The notes beneath the pieces were generated by a model. It saw only the letters and a program-made list of their open reading frames with translations. It was not told the DNA's origin and ran no database searches. The position numbers and the translations under genes were made by a program. Positions 7,955 to 53,429 of a stretch of 64,000 nt of DNA are shown here, in pieces (positions within the stretch are counted from its first letter, which is position 1; every line of letters starts with the position of its first letter). The stretch is from positions 496,001-560,000 of the forward strand of contig BQFW01000005.1 of the NCBI GenBank assembly GCA_020891255.1, given 5' to 3'. This DNA comes from Entomortierella parvispora E1425 (taxonomy: Eukaryota > Fungi > Mortierellomycota).

Positions 7955-9419
<1,465 letters not shown>

Positions 9420-13917: not shown

Positions 13918-14906
13918 ATGTTGAGATTCCAAGGGAAAACGTAGACTTCGATGTAATACCACCTTCCTATCAAGTCAAGGTCCAACTTTCTCACAATAAT
14001 AATAGCAGTATTATTATAACCCATTTTTTTTTGTTTGAAAAAAGAAATCTTGGCGTCAAGAGAGCAGCTCAAATCGTAGGGGAGATAAGGAAGTTCTGTC
14101 GCTCTGGCATGTGGGTTGAGCTCTGTAGTTGCTTGTCAACTTGCGGCGGTATGGTCATTTTCGGATGCAGAGGATGACATCCCCCGTCGCCGGTCGTTCA
14201 TTGACGGTTCCGGGCATTCTCAATTTTATAACTGGTGGGTTGGTGTGGTCTACTCTCTTACCTCTCTTACGGGCAGTAAAAAGGAAGAGTCTCTTATGGC
14301 GCAGTCTTTTTGGCGCATGGCAATGTGAGGGATTGTAGGTAGCTCAGAAAGTCAGATCGCCATTCCTTGACGACAGGCGTGTCAGACTGTTTAGATAAAT
14401 CCCTTGCACCCCTCTTCACTTCAGCCGATCGCTCCTTTTGTTCAACCTCTAAGCGAGGTAGACTTTCAAACTGTGGTTTAGCCATTGTCGTGGATAAAGG
14501 CGATAAGAGTCTGCACATCTTACCCCTGCCTTGAAATCGTTGACGAGATCAAACCATCCTTGGATGAAGCCCCTCACTCCCTTAAGTTGAATGTATCGCG
14601 CTGGAGACTTGAATTTCTATAATCATACTACTTCTGAAATCTTGCTTTTTCTCTGCCCTCCCCTTGAGCCACAGCATGCACGTCGAACTATGCACGACTG
14701 GCAACAAAAGGGGTTCACAATGCTTCCATGTTGACATATGTTTATTGAAAAATATCTTTCAAAATTGAGCAAGTCAAGGACAAACTTCCGAACACCATAT
14801 TGACTATCTTCGCCATTCTTGTGTTCGCTCCTCTCTTCCTGCAATGAGCTTTCAGCTTCAAAAGTAATCTCCATTCCCACAATTTTTTTTTCTCGCTCTT
14901 GACACA

Positions 14907-16273
14907 ATGGCATCGAATTACATACCCACGTCCGAGCAAGGACTCACCGCACTAGTTTGTCTAGCTTTTCATTTCTCATGCTTCTTTATCGCGAAGACTT
15001 TTATCCCCTTCTTCGGCAAGGATCGTCGCAACCTCTCTTGGGTCTTAACCCTGGTCAATGCCATCGTTATCTCCATCGGGGGGTTTTACGCCCTGACACT
15101 GCACACCCGCACGATAGTCTCAAGTCAGATTCCGTATGAAAGCTACAGCTCTTCTCCGGGCTCTGGATTCTACCGGTACGATATTGCCTACACCCCAACG
15201 AATCTGCAAAAATTACCGATTGCAGGTGCGCTGGAGGGTTTGGACTACGTGACCTTGGATCCATCGCTGATGGAGCTCCATTCCGAGGCCCAGGACCAGG
15301 TTTCGCTGACCAGGGCCAGAGCTGCGTTTTACAGGGAGTATGACCGCGCCCGATCAGCAATGCCATGGTACCACCGTGTCATCTTTTTCGACACCCGATT
15401 TCAGCCCGCAGATAGTCCCACGGGCCAATTCCTAGTGACCTTCTTGGCAATGTACCTCATCACGGATCTTTTGTGCGGCATTCGATACTACAAGGAGAAG
15501 ATCTCGTTTTTGGCAGGATGGGTTCATCACATCAATTACATTGCCATCTCCTACTACGCCTGTGTAGTTGGGAAAGAAAGCCATAGTATCGCCTGCGTGC
15601 TTGTGATTGAGGGTATTATAAATATTTTGGGAGCTGTAGAAGGAATGCATTCGCGCTTTTTTTTTTCCACTGACGGAGAGCTTCTTTTTTTTTCTCAAAT
15701 CCTCAAGTCCCAACTGTGGTCATTGGTCTTGGATTCCTCAACAAGCGACTCAGAAACGACATGCTCTTTGGGGCGACCTATATGATCTTGCGAATCTTGT
15801 TCGACTTCGCGCTCATGCATGACTATATCTTTGGCCGACCCTCTATGGGCTTGTCTAGCAAGATGATTGGCTGCTACAAGTCCCTCTTGCACGTAAAGTT
15901 CTTTTATGACTGGGTCCAACAGCAGATCAGGCTTCGCAAGAGAATACCCACCATTCCCGGCCACTGCTCAGCTAAGGACGCGAAGAAGCCTTTGAAAAAT
16001 GAAACCGCGTTGCCTCAGAGTGCTACGGACCAAGAGAAAGGGTCGTTGCCTGTTTCACTACGGGCTAGAGTCGAGAACTCCAAGGAGCCCATGGAGGGAT
16101 CAAATATTGAGGTGGACTCGCCTTGCGTCCAAGCGATTCTCTCCACAGAAGCATTTGTAACAGCGACAATACCACGGCGTCGCGTAGACAAGCAGCACAG
16201 AAGATCTGGCAGTGCTGCTTTGGCTCGAGATGCAGAGAATCACAGCGCTTGGAGCCCAATCGCCGTCCGTTAG
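14907..16273 (+). CDS. TLC-domain membrane protein, copy 2 (intron 15613-15707)
   Basis: Colinear paralog of 12531-13917 with the same intron position and phase; YLITDLLCG, GWVHHINY, IE|VPTVVIGLG. Confidence 0.75.
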
Positions 16274-18412
16274 GACATGAATGGTGGATCGACTTAGTTG
16301 GTGCTAACTGAACGTGAAGATTAAAATATGTCCCAAAGCCTTGTCATTTGTGGCCAAGAGGACATACTGTTCAATTCGAGAGAGTGCAGGGACACCTACA
16401 TGTGGAAGGCATCCGCTGTTCGCTCCCCTCCCCCCTTTTTTGGAATCGTACAAATTGTGGAAACAGACTCAAGAACACGAGTCCGCGGGGGCTCTTGCAC
16501 TCGTACCATGTGCACTGATGCTCAGGCCGTGAATTGTCTGGCAAAGATATGTCAGCACCTGAAAGCCAGTGACAAGATCGGCACTCTGCCGACCAAAGGG
16601 GACAGAGAAATTCGCCCTGGTTGTGTCCCGAGCCTTTCTGTGCAGGATCAAAATGATACAGCAGTGGTTTTGACATTGATCCCTGGGCTTCTGCCGCCGC
16701 TTGCTGTTGTTGCTTTGCATAGATATCCTAATTTCAACCATCAACTCACCTCTTATCCCTCCTTCTGTCTTCATCCTTACTCTCACAGCTTCCCAAATGA
16801 CCTTGATGACACTGGATACAACTCCTACTTTCGAACAAGGCATGGTGTAATGTTGAAAGCAGCTCTTCCAGAAAAGGTCGGGAAAAAATTGGATCTGGTA
16901 TCAATGCCTTTGGGAGAGTGATGGCAAGGTTGTACACTCCGCTACTTTCATCCGTATGGTTCAAGAGTGTACATCGGCCCTGATCCGAAGCTCCAGACCG
17001 TGCCCGTTTTACTGTACGACTGTCTGTTTATCCTTGCCTCGCTGCTCTCCGTGGGGAAGAGTAGTGGCTCAAACCTCTAAGAAATCAAGGCCCTTTGTGT
17101 CTACTTTTCGGGATAGGGCCAATCCATGGGGCATGGAGCATGGGGCATGTGTCAGCAGGGATGTTTGTCAAGCTTGCTTTAGGAGAAGCACACACTTTAG
17201 GATCTGACGCTGCGTGAATTTGTTTGGGTCAAACAGAAATGACCTTGTGGCTGTAGCAGACCATCGTCGGAAATACTTGACCTTGAAGTGACGACAAATT
17301 GATGGCGTGAGAAATCGCTATAATTCCCTTGGACGATCCGCGTGTCTTCATCTAATCCACTTTCTTCTATACCGTTGCTCTTTTCGGATGGGCTCTCACG
17401 GAGCAAGACGAGATTCTTAGTTCTTTTTTCGCGTCTGACTTTGGAAGGAAAGATGTTTTTCCCCAATGCTTTGGATTGAGGGAAGATGGGGAGCATGCGA
17501 TACGAGGGAGGGCGAGAGTTGTCATGCGGGTTTATCAGCTTTTTGGTCCAATCGGATATAGGTCTTGGGTCCATTTGAAGTGTTTGTTCGGAAGGGCTCT
17601 GCTGAAGGAAAAAAACCGAAAACTTGCTCGGTGTCTACCAATGTCGTGTGTAATAGCCGGCCATGGGTCGCGCCAGACATTCTACTCCTCCGCAATGAGG
17701 TTTTGTGTCTCTTTCCTCTTTTTTTTTTTTTTTTTTTTTTTTCATCTTGTTGTGCCTAGACGTTTTTTCGTTTTTGATCTTCCGTACTTCGCCCGTCATC
17801 CATGTAACGTAGCACCGTGGAAGCCTCTCTAAAACTGCTCTCTTTTCAGTAGTCCTCAGTAGGTCCATTTGTCGAGCGCAACCAAATCGATCACCAAACG
17901 GATCTGGGTAGATGGGGGCGAAATAAAAGTTTTAATGTAGATTGACAGATCGTCGTCTCTTCACAGAAACCATATATGTCCTCTCAACTTGTGCGGGCCT
18001 TGCAATAAACCTGTAGTGTAGCTTGAAGTAAAAAGTCGAAAGTTATGACGCGTTTTCTAAACATGAGCCATGGTGATGAGACCCAGTCTAATGAAAACCA
18101 AAGCGTTTGATGATGTCTTTTATGTCCTCCACTGTGGGCGCTATACTCTTCGATCCACTAGAATTTTTGCTTCCATGCCGGATGCACGGGCACATCTTGT
18201 GAACGATGGACTTTCTGCTGGTTTTACAAATCTACGCTATGTGGGATGGTGCTCAAATTTCATGCTCTAGTCAGCTTTTCACTGCAGAATCTATTGTCGT
18301 TGACGAACCCAAAGGAGAGCTATGCGCATCCAATATATCGATCCTGAGCGAGATGAAAACTAGTGGCCAGGCACAAGCGCGAGAAGATGTCTCCTCTCAG
18401 CCCTCAAAATCT

Positions 18413-18420
18413 TATAAGTA
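18413..18420 (+). promoter_or_regulatory. TATA-like box of peptide gene 1
   Basis: TATAAGTA 101 nt upstream of the ATG at 18514, followed by a pyrimidine/CA-rich leader. Confidence 0.4.
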
Positions 18421-18513
18421 GTGCTTCCTCCTCCCTGTGAACTCTTCATTCGACTCAACCCATCACCAATCACTTCAACCAACCTCCCTCCACCACTTCA
18501 ACTAATTCTCAAC

Positions 18514-18654
18514 ATGCGTTTCTCCGTCGTTGCAGTCATTATTGCCGCCGTTACTGGTCTTGCCTTGGTCCAGGGCGCCCCCGTTGTTGACGCTGAAGCT
18601 TTGGGAGGCAACAACTGCGAGTGCGGTTGCTTCGGTGCCCCCAAGATCTGCTAA
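18514..18654 (+). CDS. 46-aa secreted Cys-rich prepropeptide, copy 1
   Basis: MRFSVVAVIIAAVTGLALVQG-APVVDAEA-LGGNNCECGCFGAPKIC*. Signal-peptide-like N-terminus; a paralog lies 1.4 kb downstream with the same length and stop position. Confidence 0.85.
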   Translation: MRFSVVAVIIAAVTGLALVQGAPVVDAEALGGNNCECGCFGAPKIC

Positions 18655-19802
18655 ATGCGATCTCACGATATCCCCTCGATAGGTCCTCTTTTGTCTCCTT
18701 CGTTCTCACAAGATATCAATACCTACCCTCAAGAACAACGATCGAATGTGGTCCTGGAAAACACCTTGTGCAGTCCCTCATGCAGCTACTCCGTCGCTAT
18801 CTTTGAGAATATAAGTTACAAACAAAAAAAAAATCTGCTCAAATATTCAGTAATGACCACCGCCTGCTCGCGAATGACGTTGTAAAACGAGGCACTGTGC
18901 AGTTTGGACAATGCTCCACAGCCCACCAAACAGCTTACCAAGAAATTTGTGGGGAGGGGTGTTTTTGTGGTTCTCACCTTCATCCGTCATATACCTGTGC
19001 TCTGTTGACAGTGGATGGAGCGATCGAAGGGAAGAGAGTTCAATCTCTTGGACCGAGAATGGCCTTCAGATCAAGGCAGGATATAAATCGTATTTGATCA
19101 TTACAGCCTTGTCAACGGTCAGTTAATGCCTCATTTGAATTGAACCTCGTGGATGGATGGATGAAACGAAGGGAGAAAACAAACAAATTGGTCACAGTGC
19201 TACTGACATTTTTCCCGCAGTACTAAAGGCGCAAAATGAGAAGAGGAGCCCAGTATCCTTTGCTGATGGGTTGCATCTGCCTCGGTATCATTGATACAGA
19301 CAGGTTTGCGTGGCCTTTTCACAGGGGAAGACGGTGGGAACCCCAATGGGAAAGGTGCGTCTTGATTCGCAAACACGCTTTGTACCACCATGTGAAATGA
19401 TGCTGAAGAGCTGTCCGAAATTGGCGCAGACGCTTGTCCTTTCGAAAGAAAAAAAAACAAAAACACGTTGACAAAACAAAACGGGATAGATCTTTGCTCT
19501 GGTGCCCGAGGGTTGCTTCAGTCTTTTTTGGCGCAATCAATCCTGAGCATATTCCCTTTTTTGGCGCCCACCATTGGCGTACATCCATCCGCCTTGCTCA
19601 TTCTTTTTGTTCTCTCTAGACAGCCTGATCCTCCAAGGTCAGAACCTGGCCTGTTGACATTACACAGGAGGGAGGAGAGAAGCCAATAGTATCCAGTGGG
19701 CTGGGGCAGACTTGTGTTGCCACTAGACGCCCTAGGTTGCACGTTAAACTGCGGATACGCTCCATCCTGACTTGTCGTGTTTACGAGGCCGCTTCATTTT
19801 CA

Positions 19803-19810
19803 TATAAAAA
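19803..19810 (+). promoter_or_regulatory. TATA box of peptide gene 2
   Basis: TATAAAAA 103 nt upstream of the ATG at 19906, nearly the same spacing as copy 1. Confidence 0.5.
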
Positions 19811-19905
19811 CCAGGAGTTCCACACCTTTGGCCACTCGTCCTTCAAGCTAAGTCCTTCCTATCCCCTCCACTCCTCCAAACCAACCCCACCCTCAACCTT
19901 CAAAA

Positions 19906-20046
19906 ATGCGTTTGTCTGCCGTCGCTCTCCTCATCTCCACTGTCGCCTTCTTGGGTTTGGTCCATGGTGCCCCTGTCGTAGCCGAGGGAGAAGCTATCAT
20001 CAACCCCTGCGAGTGTGGTTGCTTCGGCCAGCCCAAGGTCTGCTAA
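19906..20046 (+). CDS. 46-aa secreted Cys-rich prepropeptide, copy 2 (below the ORF-track size cutoff)
   Basis: Hand translation: MRLSAVALLISTVAFLGLVHG-APVVAEGEA-IINPCECGCFGQPKVC*. A-rich start context (CAAAAATG). 26/46 identical to copy 1 ungapped, with synonymous changes in the Cys core. Confidence 0.85.
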   Translation: MRLSAVALLISTVAFLGLVHGAPVVAEGEAIINPCECGCFGQPKVC

Positions 20047-20705
20047 GCGAATCCCCAAGGCCCCAAAAGGAACCTATTGAGAAAAATGTGCCTCGCTTTC
20101 TTTTCTCTCTCTCTCTCTCTCTCCCCTCCCCTTTTCACTGAAAAAGTACCGGGTGAAAATAAAAGGCATGAGGAATGCAGTTCAAAAGCATGCTTTTTTT
20201 TTTTTTTTTGTTTTTAACCCTTCTCTTGCTCACACAGAAAGTGTGGAGCTGAGACCAGTGGGTGATTTTCTCTCGCAAGACACAAAGACTGGTGGGAATG
20301 AGGTTAATAGAGTGGCTTTTGCCACAGGAAAAAATGAACTAGGCAGACCCTACCTCACATATTCGTAGAATGAGGGATTCCAATTTGAACTTGGGACCCT
20401 GCGCGCGCATGCACGTGAGGGCGCGACTCTGCGGTCTGACCCCCAGACAACTGCTGAGGTGATCCTTGCGCTGCTGGAAAGGATACTGTCAAATCAGCGG
20501 GATGCATGATGGTCGGTGGGACAAAGCTTCCCCTCTCTCTCTCACGATCGTCCACAAATGCTCGCAGTTCCCACGAGTGTGGTGCAAGCGCCAACAAGGT
20601 CTCGTGTCGTCCGTTTCATGAAGTGGATGCATTCAATTTATTTGGGCGAGACACTTTGAACATGGTATACCAAAAATACAGATAGAGACAGACTATAGAT
20701 GACAG

Positions 20706-21706
20706 CTAATAAATGTACTGTTGCACCTTGATCCAGTAGTTCCGAATGACCTGGTCATCAAACGCGTCCAGGACGCCCTCTTGAAAGTCGTTCGGCGAAC
20801 AAGCATTGAACCAGACAAAGCTCGACGCCAAAACAAAGTCTGCCCAGCCAGCTAGAAGATGGGTAAGATAAATACCAAAAAAAAGGGCAGGCCTTTCTGT
20901 TAAGTTCGGCATGATAAAAACGCGAGAGCAGTGTCGTTCTGGCTTTACAAACAAAACTGGGTCTACCACTTACGATGGCTTCCCAGGATCCAACCACCTG
21001 GCAGGAGGGCTCTGTGGATCAATCCCAAATTGTCCTTGAGCTCCTTCAAGTTCTCTTCGCGATCGCCTGCGATCTCCGCGTGGGGTCGACCTGAGCTCTT
21101 TTCGCGGGAGGTCCGGAAGTAGTGCGCGTTGTCTTCGTCTTGCATCTCGTACATATCATGGAAAACCATGCGTTGAATGGCAGGGTGCACCTTTGTCTGC
21201 ACGTACGACTCAAAGAAGCGCTGAAGATTCTTCTCGGAAGGAGAGCCAAAGAGCGAGGGGCGATCGGGGTATTTCTCTTCCAGGTACTCTGCAATGGCGA
21301 AACTGTCCGCTAATCCGGAACCGTCCTCTAATTGAAGGGTTGGCACCGTTGGTGCAGGAACATTGGGGCTAAGTAGTAACGGTGTTAATGAAAGCCCAGG
21401 TACAGTTAGACTTTATTCGGTCATAAGGAAGCGAGGAATGAACGCGGTGCTCTCCTGAGTGTGGTTGTTTGTTCTTGGAGGAGGTGGAAACAGTAGCAAA
21501 TTACTTTTCTGTCTTTTAGTACAGCATCTTGTTTCTTACCACGCTTTTGGGATCTGAATGGGAATCTCGAGGAAGGTGAGTGGGATCGAGTCATAGGTGA
21601 CATTCTTGTAGTTTAGTGCAAATTTGGCTCTCCAGACAGCGGGAGAGAACGAGATGCAACGTGTCTTGCCGTCAACAAGTTCAAAGAGCTTCAAGGTGAT
21701 GGTCAT
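20706..21706 (-). CDS. Glutathione S-transferase (GST_N_3; LigE/UstS-like subfamily), three exons
   Basis: MTITLKLFELVDGKTRCISFSPAVWRAKFALNYKNV...|PTVPTLQLEDGSGLADSFAIAEYLEEKYPDRPSLF...|WADFVLASSF. The SP.vWR, VPTL and DSFAIAEYLE motifs are present. Confidence 0.85.
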
Positions 21707-22645
21707 GGTGGGAAAGTAAAAGGTGTAGAGGGGAGCTGAGGAAACAAACGAAAGGACAAGAAAGAAAAAGAAAACCCGAGTGTCTTTTTGAGATTGTCCC
21801 CTCCTTTTGTTCGTTGCGCAGGGGTGGGAATCGGAAGAAAGAGAAATGGCGGGCTAACGTGCGCGAGCACAAATGGACGAGAAACGAGAGCTTTCAAGGA
21901 GGAGGAGGGGGGGTGAAGGGGAGAGTGCGTTCATGCAAAAAACGAAAAGGCATCCCTGTGCACCAAATCTCAACGCCTGTGGCCACGTTCCTCGGAAGAA
22001 TGCTCTCCATCTGCATGACCAGACGAGAATAGAAAAGAACAAACGAAGAGCGTTTCTTTGCCACCAAAACAGAAAAGCGCGCGCTGCACACGCGAGAGCG
22101 ACCACCATCCGATCCCCCTTCTCCGTCTCGCGCAAGTAGAGGAGAAAGAAAGAAGAGAGCAAGGGAACAAGGGAAGCCATAAGCACCCACGGCAACCACG
22201 GTCATTCCCCGCAGGGTTTCATAACGGCCGCGCAGACAAGAAGCGTGGCAGTCGGCCCCCTCATCGTCCTCCTGTTCTTTTCCCGCCGGGCGTGAGTGTA
22301 TGCCTCCTTCTTCTTCTCTGTCTGCCCCGTGCAATCAATCTTTCATACCTCCCAAAGTCGCCTCCCACCCAGCCAGCCCGCCTGCGAGCCACACAAGGAC
22401 ACAGACAATTCATTTTTAAACAATGTTGCTCCGTCTCCGTGTTCTCCTTTTGTCTGTCCAAAGGTGTCCCTCGTCTGCCCCCTTGGAGCCACAGTCGTAG
22501 CAGCAGCTGTTTGTTGCTGTCTTTTCTGTGTCATCCATCCATCCATCCTTGTCATGGCTGCCATCCCAGCTTGTCCACAAGCAATCCAATCTTGGGTCGA
22601 TGGTCTGTCCGCGTTTGCTTGCTGTCTGTCCGCGTTTCTTGCGGT

Positions 22646-22717
22646 CTCTGTCTGTCTGTCTGTCTGTGTGTGTCTGTGTCTGTGTCTGTGTCTGTCTGTG
22701 TCCGTCTGTCTGTATCT
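22646..22717. repeat. (CTGT)n/(GTCTGT)n microsatellite
   Basis: Direct reading of tandem TCTG/TCTGTG units. Confidence 0.85.
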
Positions 22718-23863
22718 AACCAACAAGGCGAGCGAGTGGCGAGATGGTTGATTTCACATGTGTATTGTGCGAATCAGAGTCAAAAAAAGACAAAAAAGAC
22801 AGAAAGAGACACGCACCCATTCCAACATGAGACAATCTGCGTTTGAGAAATGGGAAAAAAAAAACTGTTTTTGCTTGGCTTCATGGCATGACCATTGCAT
22901 GTCCCCATTATTGTCCATCCTCTCCTTCATCCATCCTCTCGTCTCTCCCTTTTCCATCACCCCCTCCCAGTTCGGCGACTCTCAAACAGAAGCCACCCTT
23001 TTCTACGTGCCCCCCTTTCTCTTTCTCTCTCTCTTGACTCCAACTCCACTCCACTCCACCCCACTCCACTCCAGACGACCTCTCCCCTCCTCTGACCCCG
23101 CTAGAAAAAGACCCTGCACCCTCTCTCTCTCTCTCTTCTCTCTCTTCCCATCCTTTGCACAGCTGAAGGTGGACACCTTTGTTACCTTTGTCGTCGCATC
23201 TTTTCTATCCAGTCCAGTCCAGGGTACATGCTCGCCCGCACGGCCAATATTCCTCCGTGCGTTTAGTCTTTTGTGATCGCCCTGTGCTACAGTTCCTTCC
23301 TTCGTTGAGTTCCTCTTCCCCCCTGCTCTCAACAACATCAACAACCTCCTTTCACTGCCACTTCCATCGTCCACACACTCTCCATTGTCATCGAGTCGCG
23401 TCTGTCGTCTAGCAGCAACAGAACTGCGGCACACAGTGTTGGATGACCTGTTGATGTCCAACCATGGCCCAAGACGCCATAGTCGACCAGGCCGAGACTC
23501 GAACACCATCATCACCACCACCGTCATCACCACCACCACCAGCAAAGACACAAGCTCTGATCCTTTGTAAGTCGAAAAGGAAGCCACACCGCACGAGGAG
23601 CTTGATGATTGTATCTGATCCAAGGGAGCCCTTCAACTGACCTGGTTTTCTGCTCTCGCTTACTCTTTTGCACTCTTGCACTCTCCTTCATACTTGCTCT
23701 CGCTTGCTTTTTTCTTTCTTTATCGTGCTGGTTCGGGAACATATCTGCTTCCTGGGAAACCAGAATATCTTTGCAGGGCTCACCCATTGACAGAGCAACA
23801 CACGGGAGCGCAGCAGCATCCATATTTTCAGCCGTCGATTCTGCGCGGCCACATCTAGGGACA

Positions 23864-26800
23864 ATGTCGCATGGCGATCCTATTCGAGGACGACCGGCGG
23901 GACCAGAATCTAGGAAAGGCACATGGTCCACCTCCCCCACCTCTCCCCCACATGCGTCTCCTTCAGCCGTCCCCACGAGCAAAGGCAGACGAAGAAGAAG
24001 AAAAAAAGGCCACGCGACTCCCAAACAACTCTCCATCTCCACCTCGTCTTTGGTGACCCCATCGAACATCCTCTCCTCAACGCATCCCAGTAGCGATATA
24101 CCACCCATCACGCCGACTGGCGATCTGGATCATCATCATGACCTCTTTGAACGGCGCTTTCACGCCACCGTGACAGATAATCTCAGCGACAGCGATTGTC
24201 AGTCTACGATCTCTCAGACTTCTGCGCCGTATTCTTCCTCTACGAGCACCGCACCTATTCGTCGAGGAAGAGTCTTTCGAAAAGCGTCGCGCGACCAGCT
24301 CTCCATGCCCATTACCATGTCTCCGCTAGACTCGACGAGCTCACTCTCTCGCACACATACACCGGCCTCCTCTTGTTACTCTTCCTTGGCCCCTTCCCGA
24401 TCTGGATCTCCATTACCAAAGCCCGACATCCAAATGCCTAGCTTACCGTCAGTATTAGAGGATGGGATCAACGGGATCAAGAATCAGAAGAGCGTATCTG
24501 CTCATTCCAAACCACCACAGCACGCGCCTTTACCACCTACTGGACATGCGCTCTCTACAAAGTCTGCGGCCTCCACGAACATGTCAACCTCAACGCCGAG
24601 CCAGCGGAAACGGAACAGGAGGAGAAAGAAGCGGCTGAGCAAAGGGAGCGGCGCCGAGGGAGAGGACGAAGCAGAAATGATCCGAAAACCCCTGAACTTG
24701 CTTGTGATGGCAGGAATGGACATGCCAGAGCAAACTGGAAACTACAGGAGAGGCATGGACGATGCACTCTACTCGTCGTATGACTCGTCCTGTGCGCCAT
24801 CGCCACCAAAGAGTGCCAACAGTATCCAGAGTAATCATGCAAGTCGACCTCAGAGTGGAGGCTTTGCAGGAAGAAGGGGGATGGGGATCGTTGCAGAGAT
24901 GCCACCCCAGATGATCCTCGCTGCAAACTCCAGCAACGAGCACGGGAAGATCTCGACACCGTCAGTAGAAGCAACCACGGCAGACGACGTGGACCGAGAT
25001 ATGCATCCACGCACTAGCACCCGTAGCAACAAGCCACCGCGTCACTCTTCACGATCCAAAAAGACAGTTGGCGCTGCAGATCCCTCTTTCAAGGACACCT
25101 CCAACGCCACTCGACCAGCACTGCCTCCTGCCGTATCATTTACAGGAACGATCGACACGACGTTGGGATCCCCTGCAGTAGGTGCCGGCCTCCTTATATC
25201 TCCACCGCCATCAGCGACGCTGGGGTCGATGCAGACGCAACTGACTACATCCACATCCAAGCGGCCGTCGCTCGGCCATGCCGGGTCCATCTTGTCGTCA
25301 ACACCGTCAGCCTCAACAGCCTCTTCACCAACCCCACTTTCGCACACGCCCACTCCAGAGGTGTCGCCAGTCCTTGGTCCATCTGCGTCAGAATCAAAGA
25401 GCGGTCGTGAGTCAACATTACGGAAAATAGACCTTGCGGTCGAGACAAAAGAACCCTCGTTGTACTCAACACCGTTCCCTTCCACGAAAGGCTATGTGCA
25501 GTCAACTGGTTCGAACATTCCTCCACCCAAGCCTGTGCGAGCAGAGATCAAGTCCACTAGGCTGAGATCCCCTCCTCGAGCAGCGAAGGTCGCAGCGCAG
25601 TCTGTCTATTCGCGAATCCCTTCACCTCCACCACCACCTCCATTTGTGAGGGCTGAGGCAAAACCAAGTGTTGGATCGAGTATCCCCCTACCTCCACCGC
25701 CACCTCCGTTTGTGAGAGCTGAAGCAAAACCAAAAGATGTGTCGAATATTTCCCTGGCTCCTCCAGCACCCCCGTTTGTAAGAGCCGGAGCAAAGATTGC
25801 CGGTGGGTCCAGCATCCCCCTTCCACCGCCACCGCCTCCATTTGTAAAAGCCGAAGCAAAACCGAGTGGTGGCTCAACCATCCCCCCGCCTCCACCACCG
25901 CCTCCATTTGTGAAAGCTCTGACAAAGCCTGGTGGTGGTTCTACTATCCCCCCGCCTCCACCACCACCGCCATCCACTCACATGTTGAACAGGAAAGGGT
26001 CATCCGACACAGCGACGGCTCTTCAAATATCCACAGCCGGCTATGCAGAAGGAACTGCAGCTTCTGTTCCACTAACACCCACTCGCAGCATCGTTGCAAA
26101 GCACGTCTTACGCTGGGATGCTCTTTCCCATGGCGATATCACGCACACAGTCTTTGACATTGATCATCATCACTCTCATCGTCGTGGCCACCGCCACCGC
26201 CATCACCACCGCCTTAGTTCAGAAGACGCTTCAGGATCCGCTTCACTCCAGTCACCTGTTGAATCACCCAGTGTGGATGCAGTCTTTGAGAATAACTTGG
26301 AGTCAAGACTTGAAGGTCCATTGGAGCATACACACGCTTCGGTCAGGGAAGGGGTTACCTATGCAGAAGCTGTGTCAAAGGAGGTACTTGAGGGGGCATC
26401 TTTGCAGGAAGAAACTGCTGGACACGACGAGGCACTACCTGAGGACGAACCAGGACCAAAAGAAGGTCCTTTGCCCACTGCAGGTTCAGCCCTATCGGGA
26501 CCGCAGGAAGAATCAGGACCATCGGCAGCACCGTTCACAATCGAAATGGACGTGCAAAGGTTTGAAGGTATGTTTTGCAATTATTCTTGATATTATGATA
26601 TATTATATCCTTCTGTGAATAGCCTAACTCAGAAGTCATTTTTGCATTTACAGAGCTGTTCTGTATCGATCCTGCAGAGGAGCAGAGGAGACAGAAGGCC
26701 AAGGAGGCGAGTTTGCAGGCAAAGTAAGTTGTCCAACGTGTTCCAACACTGACAGCCCGGCCTAAAAAGCTAAACTAATATGACTGGTAATCGCTAGGAT

Positions 26801-29261
26801 CAAACCCAAAGAAGTAGCCTTGCTAGATGTCCGAAGGGCGACGAACGTATCCATCGGACTCTCTCGGTTAATGAAACGCTACGAGTCGTTCGAGTCCCTC
26901 AGGTCCATGATTCTGTCATTAGAAATTGATCTGGTGTCCCAAATCCCAGCACCAGCCTTTCAAAGTAACATTTCCGACCGATCTGCGTCCACTTCGAGCC
27001 CAGCGTTTGCCTCTTTGTCATATCCAGTGAAACGAGGCAACGATATGAGTGTTCTGGGTCATAGAAGAAACGCCAGCGCAGCAAGTCTCGGTTCATTAAG
27101 CAGAATGCCCATGGCCATACGACCCAGTGGTCCACCCCTCATATCCTCTGCGCGATCCTCAGTAATGATTACCAGGTCCTCATCCGCATCTGCAATGTCC
27201 CGTGGATTGGAGGAGGCTGCTTCCCAATCTGTACCCGATCTGTCCAGTCTTGTCTCCTCCTTTTCAGGCCTGACGTTGAGATCGCCTCCACTTTCTACAA
27301 CCTCTTCAGCATTTTCGGCTCATCCTCTGTTTGCCTCTCGCCCGACCTCTCCTACCCTGTCGGCCACAGATACCAACGGCTCACTGTTTACGTCGCGATC
27401 AGAAACGCCTATTGTTTACCAGCAGCATCTCTCATTGGAGGACCTATTGACTTTGGAGCCTCTTTTGCCAACAGATAAGGAGCGCACCATGCTGGAGGTC
27501 TACCAACGCCAGAACAAGGCCGAATTCTTAGCAAATGAGACGGACGCCGTCCAAAAGCTGGGTCTGTCGGAGAGGTTTATGTATGCGATGAGCAAGCCCA
27601 TCTTCTCGCCGCCCCCAGTGCAACCACCATCAAGGCCTGAAAGTCCAGTGGCTCATAAGAAGGTTGGATCCGGTGTCTTTCAGTTGGCCAGGTCGGCAGG
27701 CAAACTTGGACTGACTAACTTGTCCTCCTCCGACGAAGATGCGCTCAAGATGGACGACTATTTGTTTGCGTCGATTTGCATGCTCCGATTTGATTCTGAT
27801 CTAACGTCGACAGAGTCGCAGATTCAGGAACTTATTGAAGGATGCGATGCTCTGCGGATGAACGAAAACCTAAAAACTCTTTTCCTTGGTGTCTTGAAGG
27901 TTGGCAATTTGCTCAACACCGTATATGGCCGCAAGAGATCGTCATGGCACCATCCACAGACGCCTCTGGCCCCGCAATCTCAGATGCCCCTGCGCTCGAC
28001 TCTGACGGCTGCAAAGTCAATGCCGAATCTCTCGCGTGAATACGCTCAATCGGCATCAGATTCAGCAAATGGATCAGGTCCCCCTCCTCCTCCGCCACCG
28101 CCACCACCAGTCAAAATGACACCTGGTGTCATCCCTCCTCCTCCACCACCTCCACCAGTCCGACTTCCAGGAACTGCAGGCCCACCTCCGCCACCACCTC
28201 CTCCACCTCCAAGCCCACTTCCTGGAGCGATTAATGCAATGTCGTCGACGCCTGGCCCAGCAGAAAAAGGCGCATCCCCATCTTCCCAAAGCTCTCCACA
28301 TCTTCCTGGAGGTCATTTGCACTCGCCACAGCAGCAGGGAGCAGCAGGATTCCGGCTACACAGTCTTTTGAAGCTCAGAGATGTGCGCAGTCTGGACAAC
28401 AAATCCAACTTGATGCACTACCTTGCGACCATGGTTGCAAACAATAACCCCGAGTTGCTGGACTTGCCGGAACAGTTTGGGTTCTTGGCTAAACTGGAGC
28501 AATACCGAACCAAAGAAATTCTGGATCAGGTCTTGGAGCATCAAAAGGCGATCCAAAAGCTCACTGATTTTCGATCAAAGCTGGAGGCGAAAATAGAGTC
28601 GATGAAGGAATCGATGCGAACAGCTAAGAAGGCGGACATTGGAACTCTTGAAGAGAACGAAGACGAGGGCGAGGACGCAAATGACAATAACGTCGATGGA
28701 ATCTTGAGTGACGATGAGGAGAGTGAAGAGATGGTGACAGCTAGACGTGTTGTGAGCAAGCTGGAAAGGTTCTTGACGGAAGCCCAGACTCGATACGATC
28801 GTCTTGTGGACTTGGTAGCCACTTTGGATAAGAGCTGGCGATCCACCGCCAGCTACTTTGGCGAAAAATCTGCTGGAGACCCTCGTCCACCCTCAGGTCC
28901 CAACAACACTGAGAGTGGTGATGATTCAGCAGCAAACTTGCAAATGCAGCAGCAACAGATGGTCACCAGTATGACCTCAAGCCCTCGCAAGCCCCCAGAG
29001 GAGATCTTTTCGGTCCTACACGAATTTTTCCGACACTTTCGAGAGGCTCATCTCCAGAACGAGGATATTTTGATTCGTGAGAAGCGTCAGGCTGCCATGG
29101 CGAAACGGATGGCGGCCTCCTCGCCTACTCCAAGAGGATCCGCGTTTAGGAGGACACCGACCCCAGCTCTGACTGATGGCAATGGCTCGACTGCGCCTAG
29201 CACACCATCGTCTACCATGTCTCCTGCCCCCTACCTGTCTTCTTTCTCCAAACTGCCTTAA
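23864..29261 (+). CDS. Formin-like protein: FH1 poly-Pro repeats plus an FH2 domain fragmented by long insertions (introns near 26570-26653 and 26723-26797)
   Basis: FH1 repeats PPPPPPFV(R/K)AEAKP; FH2 motifs LRWDAL...HTVF, FE|ELF, LLDVRRATNVSIGL, LSERFM, LKVGNLLN, AGFRLHSLLKLRDV, NLMHYL, YFGE, EEIFSVLHEFFRHF. The start ATG at 23864 is inferred. Confidence 0.85.
25600..25975 (+). repeat. Coding tandem repeat, ~60-nt unit (FH1 region)
   Basis: About six units of IP(L/P)PPPPPPFV(R/K)AEAKPxGGSx. Confidence 0.85.
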
Positions 29262-51619: not shown

Positions 51620-53429
51620 ATGGTTGTCCACACTAACACCTCTACCCCCGCCTACGTTGACGCCGAGGAGGCCCGCTTCCAACAGGAGGTTGAGAAGGTC
51701 AAGGCCTGGTGGGCTACCGAGCGCTTCAGCCTTATCACCCGCCCTTACTCCGCAGAGTCCATCGTCTCCAAGCGTGGAACCATCGAGACTGACTACGCTT
51801 CCAACATCCAGGCCAAGAAGCTCTGGAAGTTGCTCAAGAACCACCGCAAGAACGGAACTGCCTCCCACACTTTCGGTGCCTTGGATCCCATCCAGGTTGC
51901 CCAAATGGCAAAGTACATTGAGACTGTCTACGTCTCCGGCTGGCAATGCTCCTCCACCGCCTCGTCCTCGAACGAGCCCGGTCCCGATCTGGCTGATTAC
52001 CCCATGGACACCGTCCCCAACAAGGTCGAGCACCTTTTCTTTGCCCAGCTGTTCCACGATCGCAAGCAGCGTGAGGCTCGTTTGACTGCCCCCAAGGAGC
52101 AGCGCACCAAGATGGCCAACATTGACTTTTTGCGCCCCATCATCGCCGATGCCGATACCGGTCACGGTGGTATCACTGCTAACATGAAGCTCGCCAAGAT
52201 GTTTGTCGAGCGTGGCGCTGCCGGTATTCATCTGGAGGATCAGATGGCTGGAACCAAGAAGTGCGGACACATGGCCGGCAAGGTTCTCGTCCCTATCTCG
52301 GAGCACATCAACCGTCTCGTTGCCAGCAGAGTCCAGTTCGATATCATGGGTGTCGAGAACCTGATTGTTGCCCGTACCGACTCTGAGGCTGCCACTTTGA
52401 TCACCTCCAACATTGATCCCCGTGACCACGCCTTCATTCTCGGAGCCACCAACCCCAACTTGAAGCCCTTGGTCGTCGAGATGGCCGCTGCTCAGGCTGC
52501 CGGCAAGAACGGAGATGATCTCCAGGCTGTGGAGGATGACTGGGTCAAGGCTGCCAACATCAAGTTGTACCGTGACGCTGTTGCCGATGCCCTCAAGGCC
52601 AAGGGCAAGGACACCGCTGACTGGCTCGCCAAGTCCGAGTTCATGTCCAACCCCGAGGCTCGCCATCTCGCCAAGTCCCTCGGTGTCGAGGTTCACTGGG
52701 ACTGGGACCTCCCCCGTACCCGCGAGGGATACTACAGATACCAGGGCGGCACCCGCTGCGCCATTAACAGGTAAGGACTGACCCTTCTCTTCATAAGTTC
52801 TTTCGCCACTTTCGCCACCGGTTTTGATCGGTGGTACAAGAGACATAAGAGCTTATTTTGTTGTCACCTTGACGAGTCACACTGTGTGTTCTTACTAACG
52901 TGGTTTTACCTCTGACTCTTTTTCCTCTCTGACTCTTCCTCTCTGTAGAGCTGTTGCCTTTGCTCCTTACTCTGATTTGTTGTGGATGGAGACCAAATCG
53001 CCCATTCTTGCTCAGGCCACCGAGTTCGCCAAGGGAGTTCTCGCCCAACACCCCAACATCATGCTCGCCTACAACCTGTCGCCCTCGTTCAACTGGGATG
53101 CTGCTGGTATGACCGACAACGACATGCGCGCCTTCATTGGTCAGCTCGGTGCCCTTGGATTCTCTTGGCAGTTCATCACCTTGGCTGGATTCCACTGCAA
53201 CGCCCTCGGAGTCGATGTCTTTGCTCGCGAGTTCGCCGACAAGGGTATGTATGCCTACGTCAACGGCATCCAGCGTCAGGAGCGCACCAACAGCGTCGAG
53301 ACCTTGGCTCACCAGAACTGGTCTGGTGCCAACTACTATGACAACTTGATCAAGACTGTCAGCGGTGGTGTCTCTTCTACCGCCGCCATGGGTAAGGGTG
53401 TTACCGAGACCCAGTTCGGTGCTCACTAA
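51620..53429 (+). CDS. ICL1: Isocitrate lyase, two exons
   Basis: [50 protein letters not shown] (signature), [27 protein letters not shown]. Strong codon bias. Confidence 0.98.

Follow-up and report, generated by a model that had tools for sequence, protein, structure and literature searches.

A tandem pair of unannotated 46-codon genes in Entomortierella parvispora supports a new lineage-restricted family of predicted secreted four-cysteine peptides

The soil fungus Entomortierella parvispora E1425 (Mortierellaceae, Mortierellomycota) carries, in a 64,000-nt stretch of contig BQFW01000005.1 (assembly GCA_020891255.1, positions 496,001 to 560,000 of the forward strand; hereafter the window), two very short co-oriented genes that very likely encode small secretory peptides with a cysteine-rich C-terminal core. 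An initial annotation, made from the letters of the window alone, had proposed them as a candidate new family of disulfide-rich peptides and had suggested Mucoromycota genomes for a search; the phylum is Mortierellomycota.

The locus

Copy 1 runs from an ATG at 18514 to a TAA at 18652-18654 and reads MRFSVVAVIIAAVTGLALVQGAPVVDAEALGGNNCECGCFGAPKIC, and copy 2 runs from an ATG at 19906 to a TAA at 20044-20046 and reads MRLSAVALLISTVAFLGLVHGAPVVAEGEAIINPCECGCFGQPKVC. The two intronless frames, each of 46 codons, occupy the + strand, and their starts are 1392 nt apart. Each product begins with M-R, followed by a hydrophobic stretch of 17 residues that closes with V-Q-G or V-H-G, then by A-P-V-V, an acidic spacer and a cysteine tail. 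The tails, CECGCFGAPKIC and CECGCFGQPKVC, are identical at 10 of their last 12 residues, and their codons include two synonymous differences (TGC/TGT and GGT/GGC). When the DNA of the two paralogues is compared, convincing alignment is limited to the coding block. The coordinates of the genes and of their parts are given in Table 1.

The coordinates and reading frames agree with the two co-oriented single-exon genes, about 1.4 kb apart, that the initial annotation had described, as does the sequence with its account of the tails and of their synonymous differences; the TATA boxes that it placed 101 and 103 nt upstream are found at 18413 and 19803. Its statement that copy 1 appears in the program-made list of open reading frames (ORFs) only within a longer ORF also holds, this being an ORF of 77 aa with a GTG start, but the companion statement that copy 2 has no ORF of its own does not, as it is listed separately with 46 aa.

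Table 1. Features of the peptide locus and of its upstream synteny anchor (window coordinates; CDS, coding sequence; CAI, codon adaptation index; UTR, untranslated region)
Feature	Position	Strand	Remarks
TLC-domain membrane protein gene EMPS_03651	14907..16273	+	Upstream synteny anchor; functional link to the peptides not implied
TATA-like box, copy 1	18413..18420	+	TATAAG from 18413, 101 nt 5' of the ATG; putative function
G-poor, pyrimidine-rich leader, copy 1 (presumed 5' UTR)	18421..18513	+	6% G, 67% pyrimidines in the last 100 nt
Copy 1 CDS, 46 codons + TAA	18514..18654	+	Block conserved in three taxa = ATG..TAA; CAI 0.57-0.61
Copy 1 predicted signal peptide, residues 1-21, MRFSVVAVIIAAVTGLALVQG	18514..18576	+	M-R, 17 hydrophobic residues, V-Q-G before A-P; cleavage predicted from the (-3,-1) rule
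Copy 1 spacer APVVDAEA	18577..18600	+	Invariant APV and E-x-E-A-type end (alignment); probably removed by a protease
Copy 1 C-terminal core LGGNNCECGCFGAPKIC	18601..18651	+	Cys at residues 35, 37, 39 and 46; these 51 nt free of substitutions in a second strain
TATA box, copy 2	19803..19810	+	TATAAAA from 19803, 103 nt 5' of the ATG
Copy 2 CDS, 46 codons + TAA	19906..20046	+	CAI 0.58-0.64, top of 162 small ORFs in the window
Copy 2 predicted signal peptide MRLSAVALLISTVAFLGLVHG	19906..19968	+	Layout as in copy 1; cleavage predicted
Copy 2 spacer APVVAEGEA	19969..19995	+	Family alignment
Copy 2 C-terminal core IINPCECGCFGQPKVC	19996..20043	+	Sequence and family alignment

Evidence for protein-coding genes

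The coding nature of the two frames is indicated first by comparison with homologues from two relatives (described below). In a DNA alignment of the three taxa, conservation extends from the ATG to the TAA, and the flanks can barely be aligned. The gaps within the CDS (9, 3 and 3 nt) are all multiples of three, and the five complete copies share their start and stop and show no interruption of the frame. Furthermore, differences are in excess at third positions, and the pairwise ratios of nonsynonymous to synonymous divergence (dN/dS) over the whole CDS range from 0.10 to 0.57. Homologues under purifying selection, on which the initial annotation had made its proposal depend, are therefore present at syntenic positions in other Mortierellaceae.

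Codon usage provides a second line of evidence. Calculated against EF-1alpha and GAPDH from the same genome, the CAI of the two ORFs reaches 0.57-0.64, which places them first and second among the 162 ORFs of the window that start with ATG and measure 40-60 aa, where the median is 0.18 and the third-ranked ORF reaches 0.40. Two ORFs of the window, for GDP-mannose dehydratase and isocitrate lyase, have equally high values; its ordinary genes score 0.2-0.3. The two ORFs used for this comparison lie at 7958-8524 (- strand) and 51620-53426 (+ strand), have CAI values of 0.61-0.66 and resemble GDP-mannose 4,6-dehydratase and isocitrate lyase by their sequence and by the Pfam hits of their neighbours. 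Codon usage thus predicts an abundant peptide product, and the low synonymous divergence between genera (dS of about 0.4) would fit the same codon constraint.

The upstream regions also share several traits. Of the six family copies, five have a TATA-like box 80-115 nt ahead of the gene, including a TATAAATAG box that occupies, in the metagenome orthologue, a position equivalent to that of the copy 1 box. The leaders of all six copies are poor in G (2-9%), and the six promoters share the base composition given for copy 1 in Table 1. No 7-mer or 8-mer is common to at least five of the six promoters, and no Rfam family overlaps the region.

The locus is also carried by a second strain labelled as the same organism, which is about 92% identical there. 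Its copy 1 differs by five synonymous changes and by the replacements T14A and A22V, with no substitution in the last 53 nt, and its flanks differ by about 8%. From all these data, the two ORFs very probably exist as real genes, and there is strong reason to regard them as translated genes for secretory peptides.

Copy number in the genome

The back-translated CECGCFG pattern matches the 38.9-Mb genome of E. parvispora exactly twice and the reversed-pattern control does not match at all, so that the pair at the locus is not a chance occurrence. Protein searches of the same genome with two different family members likewise found only these two places. With the looser pattern CxCGCxGxxK a third place was found, which lies antisense within an ORF of 114 aa and was attributed to chance. 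A generic scan of the genome for C-x-C-x-C-x6-C-stop was overwhelmed by TGC/TGT triplet repeats and was set aside.

Homologues and synteny in related Mortierellaceae

Homologues were sought on contigs that encode orthologues of the TLC-domain gene located upstream of the pair, whose identity is given by the ORF at 14907-15785 (98% identity to the E. parvispora TLC-domain protein EMPS_03651). TLC orthologues precede peptide genes on a contig of Gryganskiella cystojenkinii (GCA_015852425.1; L159) and on a soil-metagenome contig (L156). On both, the homologues are on the same strand as the TLC gene and lie downstream of it in a gap free of annotation. The G. cystojenkinii contig has two unannotated ORFs, MRFSVVAILIAAVAGVAFVQAAPVEVEAANCDCGCYGDHKPC at 14404-14532 and MRFSSIAVIVAVVALLAYVQAAPVVPLEVEAERRPICVCGCAGMPKCL at 16252-16398. 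The metagenome contig has a complete copy, MRFSVVAILIAAVAGLALVQGAPVEAEAYDHCACGGCFGSPRIC, at 14172-14306, and a second one that begins at 15558, 1386 nt beyond the first start, and is incomplete at the contig end. Since paired copies occur in these two lineages too, the tandem pair predates their separation from E. parvispora.

Between the intact copies of G. cystojenkinii, at 15214-15400 of L159, lies a decayed third copy. Its signal-like stretch is devoid of ATG, the frame shifts ahead of ...PVCLCGCPDQHQPKTC, and the last cysteine is not followed by a stop. This relic shows that copies have arisen and been lost in the cluster. The TLC-domain gene itself (14907-16273) evolves fast, with 60% identity to its own paralogue EMPS_03815, 49% to its counterpart in Gryganskiella and 36% in Dissophora, and it is tandemly duplicated on the metagenome contig (L156:7881-11404).

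As far as seen, the family would be restricted to some Mortierellaceae, namely Entomortierella (two strains), Gryganskiella and one uncultured relative.

Anatomy of the family

The family alignment comprises five complete members, two from E. parvispora, two from G. cystojenkinii and one from the metagenome, whose precursors are 42-48 residues long. Invariant positions are M1, R2, S4, A7, V13, V19, A22, P23, V24, C35, C37, G38, C39 and G41. The consensus consists of MRFS, a hydrophobic stretch and V-[QH]-[GA], followed by A-P-V, a spacer ending in E-x-E-A, zero to five residues and then C-x-C-G-(G)-C-x-G-x-x-[K/R]-x-C. The order of signal, acidic spacer and cysteine core put forward in the initial annotation is thus retained in every member. 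By contrast, the CECGCFGxPKxC tail, which had been called invariant, is so only within E. parvispora; what all members have in common is limited to C-x-C-G-(G)-C-x-G and a basic residue.

In all five members, the hydrophobic stretch is closed by a small-x-small site (V-Q-G, V-H-G or V-Q-A) followed by A-P-V. This N-terminus would be a classical signal peptide with a small-x-small site, so that the product is expected to enter the secretory pathway. The signal segment is better conserved than the core residues outside the scaffold, with 18 of 21 residues identical between E. parvispora and its metagenome relative, the TLC proteins of which are 57% identical.

The core carries four cysteines in all five members, in the framework C-x-C-G-(G)-C-x5-6-C. 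This scaffold is invariant, while the residues between the cysteines vary; indeed, one member has an extra Gly between the second and third cysteines, and another ends in ...PKCL, its last cysteine being shifted by one. An AlphaFold2 prediction made on the alignment gives a hydrophobic helix at residues 3-21 only, the remainder being of low confidence with no confident fold of the core.

Processing of the precursor

The initial annotation had assumed stepwise trimming of the spacer by a Ste13-type dipeptidyl aminopeptidase, a mechanism that the family does not bear out. The dipeptides that follow residue 21 are AP-VV-DA-EA in copy 1, AP-VV-AE-GE in copy 2, AP-VE-AE in the metagenome copy and AP-VE-VE in the first G. 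cystojenkinii copy. Three of the five members are therefore out of the X-Ala/X-Pro register, and the other two (copy 1 and the second copy of G. cystojenkinii) follow it only past non-canonical dipeptides such as VV, so that the register is consistent in two members at most. The family precursors have no Lys-Arg upstream of the core. The feature conserved directly 5' of the core is the E-x-E-A motif, the five spacers ending in DAEA, EGEA, EVEA, EVEA and EAEA. This suggests that the motif may mark a processing site releasing a peptide of 12-17 residues.

The Glu-Ala-rich spacers that precede the mature peptide recall those of the secreted, Kex2-processed repeat precursors and of alpha-factor-type pheromones. 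Unlike these, however, the present precursors have no Lys-Arg site and no repeats, display a single C-terminal core and follow an inconsistent X-Ala register.

A family without counterpart in the searched collections

Neither copy 1 alone nor the five-member alignment has a match in a collection of 5.8 billion protein clusters. The E. parvispora genes are absent from this collection and were therefore never annotated. A two-member profile searched against 1.84 billion representatives gave a single match, which is of low complexity, lies in a protein of 1742 aa and was rejected as spurious. The ESM Atlas gave no usable match. With all five members and E-values up to 10, no Pfam family (toxin, defensin, metallothionein and pheromone families included) was recovered, nor was any PDB sequence at the same threshold. 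These results agree with the initial annotation, which recognized no named family and proposed a candidate new one. A full-text literature search for the core motifs found no paper, and literature searches found no description of a ribosomal peptide from Mortierellaceae.

Pattern scans at the DNA level were equally unproductive. The CECGCFGxPK pattern has no match in JGI metagenomes, and the one match from a search for related loci (L005), reading GNPCECGG, was ascribed to chance. In bacterial and archaeal genomes, CECGCFG has at least 120 matches; the 120 examined were all considered fortuitous, none being followed by xPKxC-stop and most lying outside ORFs. As the prokaryote and metagenome scans gave only chance matches, a bacterial origin of the genes, for example from an endosymbiont, is without support.

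At the level of sequence, these data support the view that the genes form a new family, restricted to one lineage, which would belong to the known class of small secreted cysteine-rich prepropeptides.

Proposed function

We favour, with modest confidence, the explanation that these tandemly duplicated intronless genes encode a secreted, disulfide-constrained peptide that acts outside the cell, likely on other organisms. Each gene would be translated into a prepropeptide of 42-48 residues, the MRFS-type N-terminal signal peptide of which would direct it to the endoplasmic reticulum (ER) and be cleaved after residue 21. The spacer, from its invariant APV to E-x-E-A, would probably be cut off by an endoprotease. 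This would release the C-terminal part, some 12-17 and at most 25 residues long, whose four cysteines, arranged as C-x-C-G-(G)-C-x-G-x-x-[K/R]-x-C, would pair into two disulfides. Once outside the cell, the product, which codon usage suggests to be abundant, would most likely serve in defence or competition against other organisms.

Families of toxins and defence peptides typically display an invariant scaffold, variable residues between the cysteines and tandem duplication. An external target is ranked first among the specific roles because the conserved signal, fixed scaffold, variable loops, duplication and gene death of the present family match this pattern. Taken by itself, this role is put forward tentatively, its probability falling short of an even chance.

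The closest parallels are the prepropeptides of the conotoxin or defensin type, which also combine a signal, a short pro-region and a C-terminal cysteine framework, conserve both signal and scaffold and undergo tandem duplication with decayed copies. The E. parvispora family differs from them in having no Pfam or PDB match for C-x-C-G-C-x6-C and in its core of 12-13 residues, which has four cysteines and is not cationic. Fungal defensin-like peptides have about 40 residues and six cysteines. Among zygomycete fungi, Rhizomucor pusillus produces sillucin, an antimicrobial peptide of 30 residues with four disulfides that is active on Gram-positive bacteria (PMC8583803). Like the present peptides, sillucin is small and dense in cysteines, but by its description it stands apart (30 residues and 8 cysteines versus 12-17 residues and 4 cysteines), and homology is not expected.

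Several observations weigh against this explanation. The cores have a net charge of about -1 to 0 in four of the five members and are not cationic, unlike typical membrane-active antimicrobial peptides. The dN/dS values of the core are scattered above 1 but, with 12 codons, are not significant. The hydrophobic segment, of 17 residues, is unusually conserved for a signal peptide. The neighbouring genes (TLC upstream, glutathione S-transferase and formin downstream, the downstream genes differing in other taxa) give no hint of function. No family member occurs within 10 kb of the TLC orthologues at two Dissophora loci (L160 and L161), nor at the PRS7-anchored loci of Linnemannia zychae and several isolate and metagenome contigs (L171-L179), where synteny is broken; these negative results concern those loci and not whole genomes. 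Lastly, alignment offsets indicate that the contig of the second strain has one extra letter between 18602 and 18658, an interval that covers the core and the first four bases past the stop and includes a TAAA run. This letter may be harmless (one more A in the TAAA run, within the 3' UTR), may stem from an assembly error or may shift the reading frame in the core of copy 1.

Alternative explanations

The strongest alternative, although rather unlikely, is that the peptide is a signal directed at the fungus itself (autoregulatory, quorum-type or for mating), which would be secreted as a short pro-peptide and mature extracellularly. In Cryptococcus neoformans, the wall protease Pqp1 cleaves the Qsp1 pro-peptide after its secretion, and Opt1 takes the product up again (PMC7537855). 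The present family shares with it a very short precursor and, as predicted, a C-terminal active part and a pro-peptide matured by a protease; it is set apart from Qsp1, a peptide of 11 residues (PMC7537855) from another phylum, by the lack of any sequence relation and of a linked Pqp1- or Opt1-type partner. The variation of the core between species on a fixed scaffold would fit co-evolution of a ligand with its receptor, and the codon usage, which predicts high expression, is also in line with a signal. However, no match to the Ste2 or Ste3 receptors (PF02116, PF02076) was found in the genome by an exon-by-exon search made without a positive control, and the surroundings of the locus include no gene for a receptor, a transporter or a protease. 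Mating in zygomycetes is generally attributed to trisporoids. Qsp1 is not known to contain cysteines, and no fungal signalling peptide is known to carry four of them.

Strain E1425 is described as carrying a Mycoavidus endobacterium (PMC8759367). That the peptides serve as a diffusible self-signal (a quorum or mating cue), or as a cue exchanged with this endobacterium, is a possibility to which we give little weight. If true, a self-signal would give the first example, in a fungus of zygomycete grade outside the Dikarya, of signalling by a gene-encoded peptide.

It is less probable that the product is a secreted thiol-rich peptide whose CxCGC and distal cysteine bind Cu(I) or Zn(II), as in an extracellular metallothionein-like chelator, or whose CGC is redox-active. 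Metallothioneins typically contain CxC units, and the CGC motif is known for its redox activity. The density of cysteines (four in 12-13 residues), the invariant CxC and CGC units, the invariant Gly and the neutral or acidic, non-cationic nature of the cores speak for this function. Indeed, the CxC and CGC-G units of fungal copper metallothioneins, which are likewise short cysteine-rich peptides, resemble the E. parvispora cores. These metallothioneins are, however, cytosolic and devoid of signal peptide, whereas the present family has a predicted signal, only four cysteines and no Pfam match at E-values up to 10, metallothionein families included. Moreover, cysteines are normally paired into disulfides during passage through the oxidizing ER. 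Constant loops would be expected of a chelator, but here the loop lengths and the position of the last cysteine vary (CxCGGC; ...PKCL). The six promoters share no motif.

The hydrophobic N-terminus might also be an uncleaved signal anchor, i.e. the single membrane span of a micropeptide whose cysteine-rich tail would lie in the lumen or on the cell surface. Its strong conservation across taxa, in which the neighbouring gene has diverged far more, and the single continuous helix predicted at residues 3-21 are compatible with such a topology. This is nevertheless very unlikely, as a small-x-small site and the invariant A-P-V end the hydrophobic stretch in all members and a single basic residue lies ahead of it; in toxin-type peptide superfamilies, too, signal sequences are usually conserved.

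Least probable of all is that the pair is a conserved non-coding element or two decaying ORFs left open by chance, an idea prompted by the absence of annotation in the deposited genome and in every protein collection searched and by the possible frameshift of the second strain, and opposed by the shared start and stop of five copies from three taxa, the gaps in multiples of three, the excess of third-position changes, a CAI far above that of every other small ORF and the lack of an Rfam match.

Neighbouring genes

A three-exon glutathione S-transferase gene (GST_C_7 and GST_N_3 domains) is found at 20600-21700 on the - strand, 0.5-1.5 kb downstream of copy 2 and convergent with it; in other taxa, it does not adjoin the peptide genes. 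Beyond it, at 22058-29261 on the + strand, lies a large formin gene with an FH2 domain and long proline-rich FH1-like repeats, preceded by GT/CT-rich simple repeats.

Biological significance

Very short genes escape annotation pipelines. Here, a family that is conserved across genera and seemingly highly expressed is nevertheless missing from the deposited genome and from the searched collections, and the synteny-anchored search that recovered its members offers a route to such genes in other fungi. In soil and in association with roots, the Mortierellaceae rank among the most frequent fungi, and endobacteria are often found in them. A new four-cysteine mini-scaffold of 12-17 residues, as predicted here, could easily be synthesized and assayed as an antimicrobial or nematode-active agent, as a signal or as a chelator.

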